Shown here: in pieces, positions 29,501-61,700 of the stretch
How positions within the stretch are numbered: position 1 is the first letter of the stretch
How the letters are laid out: every line of letters starts with the position of its first letter
From: Paragordius varius
Taxonomy: Eukaryota; Animalia; Nematomorpha
Direction: 5' to 3'
NCBI GenBank assembly: GCA_964247055.1
Contig: OZ176059.1
Coordinates: 496,001 to 560,000, forward strand
DNA: 64,000 nt
The notes under the pieces: generated by a model
Databases searched by the model: none
Told to the model about the DNA's origin: nothing
The model's input: only the letters and a program-made list of their open reading frames with translations
Position numbers and translations under genes: made by a program

Positions 29501-32500
29501 AAAATTTAAAGGAAAAAAAATGGCGACGAAAAAGTTTTTGGATGTGGATTTTTTACAAATATTTTTTTAATGTTAAATTTTTTTGTATAATGCTCCTAAA
29601 AGACTAAAGAAAGCATATTTTCGAATTTGGCTTAATTTCTTAAACCACTTTTTTAAAATCTACAGAATTCAAGTTGCTCCGGCCGGCTACATAAAACTAC
29701 CCCAAAACGTCATGAGTGTTTTAAACAGTGTATTGTATTGTGTAACAATACAATATTTATCGTTCAAAAAAATTTTTTTGTTGTATATAGCAAATACATG
29801 CGATTATTCCCAAACCAATCACACTAATAATGATAATCCTAATATGGGCTGTAATCGACTTATTCTGACCGGGACACCTATGCAAAATGATTTGAGGGAA
29901 CTGTGGTCCCTTTTTGATTTTTGTGCCCCGGGTAGGTTGGGCACTTTGAAAGCTTTTATGGATAATATAGCGGCACCCATAGTACAATCCGCTACACATC
30001 ATAGTTTTAGCGGAAATACGGTAAATTTTTGTAGTTTTTTTCGAGTTTCATAAGTTTATAAAACAACGTATGTACAATATAGAGTTCACATAAGAGCTTG
30101 TATATATATATATATATATATATATATTATATATATATATATATATATATATAATGTGCATTTTAGTTGTCTTTTTTTTAATCTTCACCACTGATTTGTG
30201 ATATGGATAGGCTGTTTTTTTCTTCAATTTTTTTGAGTAAGACCCTTTTATACTGACTGTCTGAATTCGGATTTGACTACAAATGACTTAATAGGCCTTA
30301 TTTTTAGATGCAAATATATCAATAATCAATATTCTGTTTAAGAAAATCAATTGTATGCGGATTACGTAAAATTTTGATTTTGAAATTAAGATTTCTTACC
30401 TGGCTGCATATATTATGGAGAACCGTTGCTCATTCCATACTAAATACTTTTTTAAAAGAAATTTGTGTAAAACACACAGTACTAATTATGCGTTTTATAT
30501 GCGTTGTTATTATGTTTAGTTTTATAATAAAACAGCGGGTTAAATTTCCCTGTTTTTAATTATAGCTATATTTATACGGTATATTTTTCGCTTTTTGGGA
30601 TTTTTAAAGGCGGTTTTTACTCTCTTAGTTATAATTGTTTAAAGTTATGTATTTGATTTGTATATACTTTTTTGCTTTAATTATACTTTTTATAATGTAT
30701 TTTTTCACCATTTTTTAAATAAGGTCGTTCTCTCTTTAAAATATAATTATATCCTATTAGCTATTCTAACCCTAAGATTTATGCTAGAGGGAGAAAAAGA
30801 GCGGTGATGGGGGGGGGGGGGGTAGGGGGTAGGTTAAATTCTGCCTTTTTAATGAAATTTTTTTGTATATACCATTTACAATTCAAATTCACCCTTAAAA
30901 ATGAATTATGCGTTTTTAACCGGCTAATATAACTCACATCATTAATATGAATCTTTATGACATTGTAGTTTTTATTGTTTTTAGTATTATTTTGATTTTG
31001 AGCTAAATTTCATTTTTGAAAAAATATAAAAAAATATGGGTTATTTTCAATATTCTAAAAACATTGCATTGTTTAAGGGTGAATTTTAGCTGTAAATATT
31101 ATACAACAGATACACTTGTATGTTGGTGATAATAATAATAATACACACTATAGATTTATGGGCCTGCTGAATAAAAACAAGCACCTACTGGGTAGTAGGT
31201 GCTTGATAGTATGTACCAGTTTTCGAAAAAAATTGAATATAAATAGGTACTTACTATCATGTACGTACTTAAGTCTTTAGTATGTGTAAAATGTTTATTT
31301 TCATTTTGTTTTTTTTGAATTCCATTCATTAAATGCGTTTGAAAAATTTATATTGAAAATAGAAAGTCTAACTTTTGGAAAATAAATATCGATTATCAAC
31401 TCATTTTTTTAAATAATGCTATTATTAATACACACATTTATTCAATATACAAAATATACATCGAAAAAATGTTTAAACGATTGAATCTCGTTTCATTTTG
31501 CCAGCCTTGAGTATTTGGGTTAGATCAATATTTGCTTCACAATCCTCCATATATTTAATATCAAAATATGAATTACTATCAAAATCTGTTAAAGGTTCGT
31601 TAATATATTTGGATACATTATGTAATATGGAACATGTTAATATAAGTTTTGGTATTCGTTTTAGGCTTATACGAATTTTGTTACCGAGTATAGGAAATCG
31701 GGTCTTTATCTGACCGAAAACCCGCGCTCGATAATGCTTCTTTCAGAACTTGGAGCCAGGGTGATAGTGGATATCCATAATCACCTAACAAACAGAAATC
31801 ATTTGTTTGCACATATATTTCTAATTATATAAGCCCCATCCTGGCTAATGGATAAAAATGAGATATGATAATTGGCTTAATCCAAGCACAATCGGTTGCC
31901 CTCTCTGGGCCTAAGATCTCCGTTTTCTCTTTCACCAACTATAATTGGTTGAAAATCTTAAGATACTCAGTATATATACAAACTTTTAACAGTGGTTACC
32001 CGTGCTCATTATGTGTGGCTGATGAGTCCACAATAAGGACGAAACGCGTCTCACACTATGACACGTGGTAAACACTGTCCCCTTTAAATTTTTGTTTCAT
32101 AAAGCCACCTATTGCTTGATAGGAAGCACTATAACTTCTAATTGCAAAGGTAGGCTAAGAGAAATAATCTCCATAATATGTTAAATATTTACTAGAAATC
32201 ATTTTGTTTGCACATATATGACTGAACAATCGTGTTTCGCCATATCCTTGAATCATGTACAGATCCTGGCCATTGTGCATCCACGGATGTAATTTCTTCA
32301 TTGGCATTACATGTGATGAATTGTACATTGAGGGTACATCGATCGACCCTTTCGATTTATATAGGCCTCAACATTTTCTTTAGGTCTTAATATTTCAAAG
32401 TGTGAATGAACAATCAATGCAACCAATAGCAGTTGGCATTATAAATTTGGATAGCCATAGTTTATTCGCCATATTAAGCTTCTCAAATGACTTGGGAAAT

Positions 32501-58700: not shown

Positions 58701-61700
58701 TCTAATATGGTTAACGGTTTTGTCAAACACGGACGAGTTAACATGCTCCCATCTTCTGCTTTGCCACTACGGAAATGTAGTATTCCATGTTGCACATTAT
58801 TACCATTTTCTCGTTTTCCAACGCGTAAAATATCATGTGTCTCATATAGAGCGACAAATACATCATACATATGGTGGTAGGGAACAATGGATTTTTTCCT
58901 GGTGTCTTCAATGTTAAATTTATTATTACAATTATTATTGTTGGTAGTACCAAGGACACCTAGGTGTGACAAAGCATTCGTGCTCAAATAAAGAGTTTTT
59001 TTCCTACTTATTGATGATGATACCTCTGGTGTAATTGGATACAACATTTCAATCTTCTTATCATACGTTTTTTCCAGCATGCTTTTATTTTTATTATTGG
59101 CGTTATTGGAAAAAACGATATCCTTACTTATATACGGGGTATTTATATTATTGTTGTTGGTGGTGTTGTCGCCAATGTTTGATATGGTAGCAGAAGCAAC
59201 TAATTTTATACATTACATTACATACATTACAAGAAATAAAATAAATTGTCATCATGATAGGATTAAGACCAGGTTAAAATTAATCTAGGGTTGGGTGGAA
59301 TTTAACAAAAATTAACCGGCATATAAATGATTGTGGACAAAACCGAGTTAAAATTATATATACACCATTTTTACGATTTAAACTCTAAAAATAATTTGTG
59401 TTTTCATGCGGCTAATATAACTCATTATTAATAGAAAATATAACTTTATGGCATAGTTTATTAGTTTTTCCGTATATGTACTGGAGAAAAGCCTACAATT
59501 ATTATAGATGGAGTAGAAATAGAAATAGTTAAACAGTTAACGTTTTTGGGCGCAATAATTTCAGAGGATGGGTCTTCAACTCCTGACATCAGAAAGATAA
59601 TAGGATTGGGTAGAGAAGCGATGACCAAATTAATAAGGATTTGGAAAAACAAAAGCGTAGAAGTTGAAACCAAAAAAAGATTACTCTACTGTTTCGTTCT
59701 CCCGGTCACCACATATGGATGTGAGAGCTGGACTCTCAGAAAAAGAGACAAAGAAAGGCTTATGGCTTTCGAAAGGAGCTGTGGCATAGGATGCTAGGAT
59801 ACACCTGGTAGGATAATTAATTAACCGGTTATAACCTTTGAGCAGGTAAACGACTAAATTATTTAGAATAACTTCTACTTAAGTATAAAATCCACTTAAA
59901 TAATACGACAAAAAAACAAACTTAACATAGGGAATATGGTAAAAATTTTATATATTAGCACATTCATTCATAACCAGTCAGACACCAGAGATTAAAAAAA
60001 TTCACGGTCAAAAACTCACCCAAACTAGTCATAGCAAAAAAAGCACAAATATCACATAACCCAAAATATAATTAGAGAAGATATACATATAATATATAAA
60101 TTTCTATATATATATACCAAAGTTATGTGATGGTGATGCGGATAGTAATACATTGCTATTATTGTCGTCAACAATAAAATTATTGAGCGATTGTGTTGGT
60201 TTAGATGATAAAGGCCACATGGTAGGATTTATGCGTGTCCTAACACTCAAAACAACGCCATTTTGGCTGTCGTGTTGTAACGATGATGAGGGTGTAGTTG
60301 TCAGGTAAGCCAATTCAAGCGTAGGGCTTAAACTGATAGCCTATAATTATAATAATACAGCAAATTACATGCATGTATTGACAAAGAAAGTATAAAAAAT
60401 CTAGGCTCACCCCTAGAGTTAATTTTCAGTTTATTTTCAATTCAGTTTAATTTTCATAAATTTCATTAAATTTAATTTAAATTCGTATAACCAACTGCAT
60501 TTAGACCAAAATTGCAAAGTTGGATATAAATATACCAAATCGATATGTGAAAACCTCAAGTAGTCAAATAGTTGTGTCGTACTGACGAGTGCTAACAAGC
60601 ACGAAACTAGTCTGCGATTATTGACGATGGGTTTCACATATCGTTTATAATTTCTATTTATACTTTCATTTAATTCTATTTAATTATACTTTATCGTTAT
60701 ATTACGGATTTTAACAGCTGTTATTACAAAACATAACCAATCCGTTATTTACCATTACAAAATTAAAGACATATATATTTGTGGTAAACATAATAACTGT
60801 AAAACACCTCTAATTAAAAATATAGCATATAATATATATAATATACCGAAATGACATCATTGATATTTTGTGTGAGATTTTTAATGCGTTTAAAACCGAG
60901 TAACATAGCTACCGGTATGAATCCAAAGGCATCCATATTGGAACGGAGATACAAATCCCGCACCAAATTGTTTTGACTGAAATAGTATTCACTATAAAAT
61001 AAAAAATTAAATATAGAGACAAATAATTACTTTCAAAAGAGACAACCCCATACCTTTTTAGGGGACCTAAATTTTTCCCTATAAATTATATCTCAACTGC
61101 TAAATATATATAATGGATTGATTATGTTATCAATTAACATCACTATATCATACACTTCAAGTTCAACATAATGAGTTAAATATATTCAAAACAAATCAAG
61201 CTGTTTAAAAAAATAAGGCGTTTGTTCACTTGGAGGAAAAAAAATATATGTTTGTTTTTACATTTTGCTTGTATGATTTCAATTTTTATTTAACACTTGC
61301 ATACAACAGATTCATTTCAGTCCTTCGATTCAAATTGGGGTAGATGGATAGACCAAGGCATGTTTAAAATTAAATACTTCAAAAAATATGGAAGGAATCG
61401 AATTCAAGGCAAATGTTTGCACTAATATAACACAATCTGAAATATATATAAAAAAATTCATTCAAAGACTTATTTTAAGGTAAAATCCGAAAATAATTTA
61501 GTCAACATGGCACGTGTATTAGTTAAATTACAAAATAATACAAAATAAACCACTTCTCGTATTGGATATAAAATAAAATAGCTTTAATTTTAACTTTAAA
61601 ATTAAATAATCTCGATGTATTGCGGAAATGTTGTAAAATAAAAATGGCGTCAAACTAGTTTTATAGGGAACTTTTTTTCGAAACTTAATTTTATTTAGAT

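Follow-up and report, generated by a model that had tools for sequence, protein, structure and literature searches.

Hammerhead motifs in and near an ERCC6/CSB-like gene of Paragordius varius: probable copies of short retroelements with Penelope-type insertion structures

Three hammerhead ribozyme motifs lie within a single 64,000-nt stretch of Paragordius varius contig OZ176059.1 (the window, in whose numbering all feature coordinates are given), two of them apparently within introns of an ERCC6/CSB-like gene. Do they form a self-cleaving RNA system acting on that gene, as a preliminary description of the locus proposed, or are they copies of something that moves? We consider it likely, with a probability of about 0.8, that all three are copies of short hammerhead-bearing retroelements that lack an open reading frame (ORF) and are of the non-long-terminal-repeat (non-LTR) retrozyme or non-autonomous, Penelope-dependent kind. 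The window copies are passenger insertions. They represent two main families, A (with a subfamily A') and B, whose units have a GC content of ~26-30% in a window of ~26% GC. The elements and their ribozyme parts are as follows.

31819-32193, + strand: A1, full-length solo element of subfamily A, ~375 nt, no ORF (from the ends of genomic copies, a target duplication and an empty site)
31965-31982, + strand: TATA-like block of A1, ACTCA-R-TATATATACAA (from A1/A2 conservation)
31989-32079, + strand: A1 hairpin with the hammerhead at its tip (from sequence, Rfam HH9, folding and helix alignment)
46791-47187, + strand: A2, composite insertion of subfamily A' (from BLAST against a complete A' copy, family boundaries and a flanking 14-nt duplication)
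47023-47113, + strand: A2 hairpin with hammerhead, predicted to cleave after C47084
60397-60763, + strand: B1, solo element of family B, 367 nt (from the ends common to genomic copies, 5' at 60397/60414 and 3' at 60757-60765)
60541-60643, + strand: B1 hairpin with hammerhead, core CUGACGA, predicted to cleave after C60612

The pattern CTGAYGA-N(6-30)-CGAAAC matched the window exactly three times, at 32019, 47053 and 60582, all on the + strand and at the positions first described. Dinucleotide-preserving shuffles (n = 100) gave an expectation of 0.02 matches, and 0/100 reached three. Each copy holds the full type I core (CUGANGA...GAAA, the G10.1-C11.1 and A15.1-U16.1 pairs, and GUC as the NUH triplet), with the GUC triplets ending at 32050, 47084 and 60612, and this core is invariant or nearly so across 28 A-type copies. 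As judged from core and helices, the three motifs are confirmed as type I hammerheads (Rfam clan CL00010). In A1, helix I would be formed by 32013-32018 with 32051-32056 and helix II by 32026-32029 with 32037-32040, predicting cleavage after C32050. At the Rfam gathering threshold none of the three was matched. Searches of short stretches by E-value recovered A1 and B1 below that threshold: Hammerhead_HH9 on A1 (32000-32072; 32.6 bits, E = 1e-6, gathering 52 bits) and Hammerhead_1 on B1 (60576-60618; 25.9 bits, E = 2.5e-4, gathering 34 bits). The scores stay low mainly because helix III is 2 bp long with a loop of 0-2 nt, the two-base centre.

Each hammerhead forms the tip of a 90-103 nt hairpin in which helix I is extended into a 25-30 bp stem, in line with the ~90-100 nt hairpins reported initially. 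When stretches of 100-116 nt spanning these hairpins were folded, the energies ranged from -36 to -42 kcal/mol (z-scores of -4.5 to -6.6), and 0/200 shuffles were as stable. An alignment of 20 core regions from both families showed 98.6% pairing in helices I, II and III, against 19-51% when partner columns were slid. Changes on both sides of a pair between A and B were seen at five pairs (three in helix I, one in helix II and one at the centre of the helix III palindrome), although the 20 regions are effectively two lineages and thus offer few independent events per covarying pair.

Helix III consists of A-C, two bases and G-U, giving the six-base palindrome ACGCGU in A and ACUAGU in B; the type I architecture with a 2-bp palindromic helix III, likened from the start to that of Penelope-like elements (PLEs) and animal retrozymes, can be read directly in the cores. 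By its sequence, a helix III of 2 bp with a 2-nt loop is one that cannot close within a single molecule, and the palindrome could pair two copies. Because this palindrome is too short for a monomer, solo copies are expected to be poor cleavers and probably need to dimerise. Consistent with this, single motifs of such architecture are reported to show little or no cleavage, dimers being active (PMC4209133, PMC7229834). In A2, the palindrome is weakened (ACGUGU for ACGCGU), as is distal stem I, by sequence changes. Cofolding two hairpins yielded only generic extended duplexes; the double hammerhead is a pseudoknot, which the nearest-neighbour model cannot score.

A TATA-like run lies 10-14 nt upstream of each hairpin base and starts at 31971, 47001 and 60525, the positions first described. 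The TATA-like block is identical at 17/18 positions between A1 and A2, between flanks that are 45-70% identical, and family B carries a similar block that is 97% conserved. Over the hairpin, A1 and A2 are 90-95% identical, and over the remaining element 45-75%. Because both hairpin and block stay conserved while the rest of the element diverges, they appear to be kept by selection on active lineages.

The same architecture recurs throughout the genome, an assembly of 44 contigs and 110.6 Mb. A search for intact cores of exactly this architecture gave at least 173, compared with 0 for the reversed pattern, and a BLAST-type search with two of the hairpins gave 127 and 327 first-look candidates. 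We also used three sequencing runs (X1, X4 and X5), available as contigs, whose even coverage of intronic and intergenic sequence marks them as DNA-like; the A2 hairpin had a summed contig word depth of ~200x the single-copy level. The copies fall into subfamilies A (~380 nt), A' (a unit of ~300 nt, which shares the 5' part and hairpin of A and has a different 3' tail) and B (367 nt as a solo copy, 455 nt as a tandem unit). None of A, A' and B contains an ORF, which agrees with the initial remark that ORFs explain none of the motifs. Neither a recurrent ORF of at least 110 amino acids within 1.5 kb of 60 sampled copies nor a reverse transcriptase or GIY-YIG ORF beside A, A' or B was found. The claim that at least two families of small ribozyme-bearing mobile elements have spread here is thus borne out by hundreds of copies, by target duplications and by an empty site.

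Among sampled copies, 3' ends are common and 5' ends stop at many points, with no pile-up of 5' truncations at the ribozyme cleavage site. In eight of ~45 sampled B copies, the truncation fell just 3' of the hairpin base (60629-60661, in family B coordinates), as if the stable hairpin had stalled reverse transcription. The 3' ends show neither poly(A) nor a simple repeat, and the long 3' end of A runs into TTCTAA, which is also the sequence at the start of the element. The majority of genomic copies stand alone or form inverted pairs. Head-to-tail tandems of two to three units with a 444-455 nt period occur in family B, and a tandem junction of A' with a ~290-nt period was found at one locus (L018) and in the DNA of another strain. 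All opposite-strand pairs less than 1 kb apart among the listed intact cores (17/17) run minus-then-plus, that is, head-to-head and divergent, and each has its own inner junction and arm length. One arm reaches the full 3' end and the other stops ~35-38 nt short, in 12/12 B pairs and 4/4 A pairs. A duplication of 13-14 nt lies flush around seven of nine family-B head-to-head pairs, which indicates that such a pair is one insertion event.

Within the window, the insertion events themselves can be read from the following features.

31794-31818, no strand: left target-site duplication of A1, 25 nt (direct repeat)
32194-32219, no strand: right target-site duplication of A1, 26 nt with one extra T (direct repeat)
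33884-33910, - strand: empty site of A1 in the right arm of the long-inverted-repeat transposon that hosts it (arm alignment)
46777-46790, no strand: left target-site duplication of A2, 14 nt (direct repeat, spacing 411)
47188-47201, no strand: right target-site duplication of A2, 13/14 identical, ending 6 nt upstream of the AG of a putative 3' splice site (47206-47207)

The boundaries of A1 match those that genomic copies have in common, at 31817-31820 (5') and 32188-32198 (3'). Aligning the filled left arm of its host repeat with the reverse complement of the right arm revealed a single clean insertion of 375 nt plus the duplication. The uninterrupted target is present once, in the opposite arm, so that filled and empty sites lie 1.7 kb apart. 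The host element belongs to a repeat family with at least 39 loci, which makes A1 a nested insertion inside another transposon. A2 is a composite, in which an inverted 3'-tail fragment (46791-46846, minus strand) lies head-to-head with a full copy that starts at 46835 on the plus strand. Target duplications and the preserved empty site show that these elements are mobile. No other fragment of the A, A' or B families was found in the window.

The host element of A1 (31226-34463) is 3.2 kb long, with long inverted arms that are 92-98% complementary and whose inner ends lie ~1.06 kb apart. Its 616-nt arm recurs at at least 39 other genomic loci with 79-94% identity, in many cases split in two. 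The host element is probably a DNA transposon with long terminal inverted repeats or a member of a fold-back family.

Which machinery could have moved such elements? Insertions of PLEs are characteristically heavily truncated at the 5' end, form partial tandems, have an inverted, 5'-truncated copy next to them, carry a tail of 30-40 bp on one side alone and are flanked by target duplications that differ in length (PMC8557442). Taken together, the copies of A, A' and B carry this Penelope-type signature as defined there. The genome also holds PLEs with open frames of 758-788 amino acids and RYVDD and GIY-YIG motifs, and these ORF-bearing copies likewise form head-to-head pairs with a one-sided tail of ~30 nt and target duplications of 12-15 nt. 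Individual head-to-head loci were traced at L071 (5149-8551), L072 (5569-9507), L073 (4697-7235) and L074 (5191-8045); the 758-788 amino-acid frames stand in L071 and L072, and the RYVDD and GIY-YIG motifs come from the frame in L072. Near contig ends, no more than ~8 kb away from them, are partial GIY-YIG matches interrupted by in-frame stops (G000 C7:7794, C28:8476 and C3:14411901), which may represent a second, subtelomeric Penelope-like family.

Several observations weigh against the view that the motifs belong to Penelope-dependent retrozymes. In the sampled ORF-bearing PLE loci no hammerhead was detected, whether strict or loose patterns or Rfam searches with E up to 1-10 were applied. 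The window copies A1 and B1 gave no blastn similarity to 14 GIY-YIG loci save for an unrelated B fragment, a comparison that covered GIY-YIG loci from one search and had the longer A and A' tails of other copies outside it; the genome may hold further Penelope-like families. Around B1 no convincing target duplication was found, only an ambiguous, imperfect 12-nt repeat further out (60336/60822). The window copies are solo or inverted and not the tandem arrays that define classical retrozymes. Insertion ends lie off the ribozyme cleavage site; the template is thus something other than simply a linear monomer released by cleavage. Finally, it is by inference only that the elements are transcribed, that their RNA is cleaved and circularised, and that a particular reverse transcriptase copies it. 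Comparison with PLEs that carry reverse transcriptase and GIY-YIG domains gives a divided result: the insertion architecture matches, and the sequence of the 14 loci does not. Since no sequence is common to the sampled PLEs and A or B, it is the architecture alone that connects the elements to Penelope-type machinery. One family-B fragment near a GIY-YIG match (L070) was considered as a link to a partner and proved to be an unrelated truncated copy.

On the reading we favour, which follows the published retrozyme cycle, tandem or more-than-unit-length master copies would be transcribed, possibly from the conserved TATA-like block as a candidate promoter. Neighbouring hammerheads could then pair through the palindromic helix III (ACGCGU or ACUAGU) into an active double ribozyme that would release single units from the multimer. 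These units, as linear RNA or after ligation into a circle, would enter new sites by target-primed reverse transcription. The machinery would be borrowed, most likely from the genome's own GIY-YIG PLEs. Given the insertion ends off the cleavage site and the TTCTAA at the 3' end of A, a circular or multimeric template would fit better than a cleaved linear monomer.

A more specific proposal, which we regard as tentative and rather doubtful, is that the hammerhead elements parasitise the hammerhead-less PLEs and that, in addition, A2 supplies the branch-point region of an ERCC6 intron or cuts the adjoining intron, thereby affecting splicing. If true, the parasitism would be the clearest genomic evidence so far for a Penelope-like mobilisation of animal retrozymes, which the literature has only proposed. 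The material bears on who mobilises animal retrozymes, and on whether hammerheads serve PLEs or parasitise them.

A, A' and B are new families of an already known kind, since short hammerhead-bearing retroelements are known across invertebrates. With the amniote intronic hammerheads HH9 and HH10 (Rfam RF02275), the copies share the type I topology, the long stem I and a sense intronic position, and HH9 gives the best Rfam score for A1. HH9 and HH10 are, however, single-copy and deeply conserved with a stable helix III, whereas the copies here are multi-copy insertions that score below 52 bits and have a helix III of 2 bp.

Closest are the metazoan non-LTR retrozymes (Cervera and de la Pena 2020, PMC7229834), which share the type I fold with a 6-bp helix I, a 4-bp helix II and a short palindromic helix III, and likewise have an ORF-less, AT-rich unit (290-455 nt here; retrozyme units are put at 150-450 nt). 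Further likenesses are target duplications longer than 4 bp and coexistence with autonomous PLEs; tandem copies occur here in family B and, for A', in another strain. Unlike them, the present copies are mostly solo or inverted head-to-head and do not form long tandem arrays, stem I is extended to 25-30 bp, and insertion ends are fixed and off the cleavage site. Analogous retrozyme repeats occur in many invertebrate phyla, and PLEs were already named their likely mobilisers in 2020 (PMC7229834). PLEs with hammerheads in their pseudo-LTRs (Cervera and de la Pena 2014, PMC4209133; Craig et al. 2021, PMC8557442) resemble our families in insertion architecture and in the small palindromic helix III, and 'dual' hammerheads on opposite strands, 100-700 bp apart, were reported in 2014 (PMC4209133). 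They differ in that the copies here have no reverse transcriptase or GIY-YIG ORF between or beside repeats, and helix II, 6-8 bp in minimal PLE hammerheads, has the canonical 4 bp here.

Sm-alpha of Schistosoma and newt satellite 2 are also short, dispersed or tandem non-coding repeats, with a type I hammerhead that works best as a dimer. Sm-alpha carries tRNA-like RNA polymerase III boxes, and the newt repeats form satellite arrays; in the Paragordius elements, by comparison, the upstream block is TATA-like and the insertion structures are of Penelope type. What the present locus adds is a clean, datable nested insertion whose empty site is kept in the same window, and Penelope-type hallmarks on ORF-less hammerhead elements in a genome with hammerhead-less, ORF-bearing PLEs.

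The position of the copies relative to the ERCC6/CSB-like gene was determined by searching its exons one by one.

25432-43458, + strand: conserved ATPase exons of the ERCC6/CSB-like gene, n = 10 (tblastn with ERCC6-like proteins)
25432-25581, 26605-26811, 28349-28543, 29850-29993 and 34776-34922, + strand: first five of these ATPase exons (tblastn)
36114-36263, 38583-38696, 39532-39636, 42103-42285 and 43138-~43458, + strand: other five of these ATPase exons (tblastn)
44432-48138, + strand: probable C-terminal exons at ~44432-44506, 47208-47573 and ~48085-48138 (weak colinear homology)

For two exons, the best matches among solved structures were human ERCC-6 and yeast Rad26, and the closest ERCC6-like homologue is a nematomorph protein (P0002) with 47-78% identity across the aligned exons. 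A search with a 328-amino-acid ORF gave no homologue. Matches of this nematomorph protein to the poorly conserved C-terminal part (43315-43449, 44432-44506, 47306-47425 and 48085-48138) are weak (E = 0.4-19), colinear and on the + strand. The frame is open over 47201-47573, behind the AG at 47206-47207, and a diverged strain shows a 2-nt and a 1-nt gap at 47220-47224 that amount to a net in-frame deletion of 3 nt. Placed by the conserved exons at 29850-29993 and 34776-34922 on either side, A1 is certainly intronic and in sense orientation. For A2, which ends ~20 nt from the probable 3' splice site, the weak colinear homology and the in-frame indel make a sense intronic position probable. This upholds the preliminary placement of two copies in ERCC6/CSB introns; B1 lies outside the gene, ~12 kb past the last placed exon. 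The intron between exons 39532-39636 and 42103-42285 also contains a decayed non-LTR retrotransposon (40324-41878, + strand), spread over three frames, with pieces of RVT_1 followed by a PHD finger.

Could the ribozymes nevertheless act on the gene? A1 or A2, or both, might cleave the ERCC6/CSB pre-mRNA co-transcriptionally, whether each by itself, as a pair or together with RNAs of other elements, and expression of the gene might be regulated in this way. A1 and probably A2 lie sense within introns, both cores are intact, their helix III segments can pair by sequence, and A2 ends close to the probable 3' splice site; such cleavage is nevertheless pure conjecture, based on position and orientation, and we judge it very unlikely. 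A1 and A2 are 15 kb apart, and exon tethering, as Dye, Gromak and Proudfoot reportedly described in 2006, means that an intron cut by a ribozyme can still be spliced. The copies are ordinary members of families with hundreds of others, A1 sits within another transposon, the 2-bp helix III with its 2-nt loop cannot form in a monomer, and in A2 both helix III and distal stem I are weakened. Since, in addition, single motifs of this type show no or poor cleavage in vitro (PMC4209133, PMC7229834), the 'self-cleaving-RNA system' acting on CSB gives way to passenger copies. Any effect on ERCC6 would become important only once cleavage had been demonstrated.

If the copies are passengers, a reverse transcriptase of the long interspersed nuclear element (LINE, non-LTR) type rather than that of PLEs could have mobilised them, with twin priming producing the head-to-head pairs. 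We hold this to be unlikely, though less so than action on the host gene. 5' truncation and target duplications of variable length occur with LINEs too, the degraded non-LTR reverse transcriptase at 40324-41878 lies in the same gene, and window A1 and B1 gave no sequence link to the 14 GIY-YIG loci. Set against this, the 3' ends lack poly(A) or a simple repeat, and the family queries share nothing with the local LINE remnant. Moreover, partial tandems together with an inverted 5' copy and a one-sided tail of 30-40 nt are described as specific to PLEs and as not seen with LINEs (PMC8557442), and the genome's own PLE copies show the same signature with the same duplication size. The abundance of palindromes of 400-800 bp with flanking duplications, and the long hairpin within each copy, might instead suggest cut-and-paste transposons, either fold-back or resembling miniature inverted-repeat transposable elements (MITEs), whose true unit is the head-to-head palindrome. 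This we find the least credible of the alternatives: each pair has an inner junction and an arm length of its own, so that a new pair must arise with every insertion; solo copies such as A1 have target duplications too; these duplications measure between 13 and 25 nt; the elements have a fixed 3' end and a variable 5' end; and no transposase is associated with the sampled copies in their surroundings. The retroelement reading with Penelope-type mobilisation thus remains the one we prefer.

Further observations concern the surroundings of the gene. High-copy stretches at 43400-43999, 45000-45199, 47600-47999 and 48400-48799 reach word depths of 200-2500x the single-copy level in the three DNA-like runs; many joints connect 43588-43833 with 47659. 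They are short, MITE-like repeats of very high copy number within the ERCC6 region. Runs X4 and X5, which come from one sample, represent a diverged strain or sister lineage that differs by a few percent from the assembly over 43130-48999. In the exon portion 43138-43281, the first differences between X4/X5 and the assembly are spaced three bases apart (43221, 43224 and 43227). Long (TA)n microsatellites lie near both ends of the intron that holds A1, at 30101-30181 and 34692-34755.

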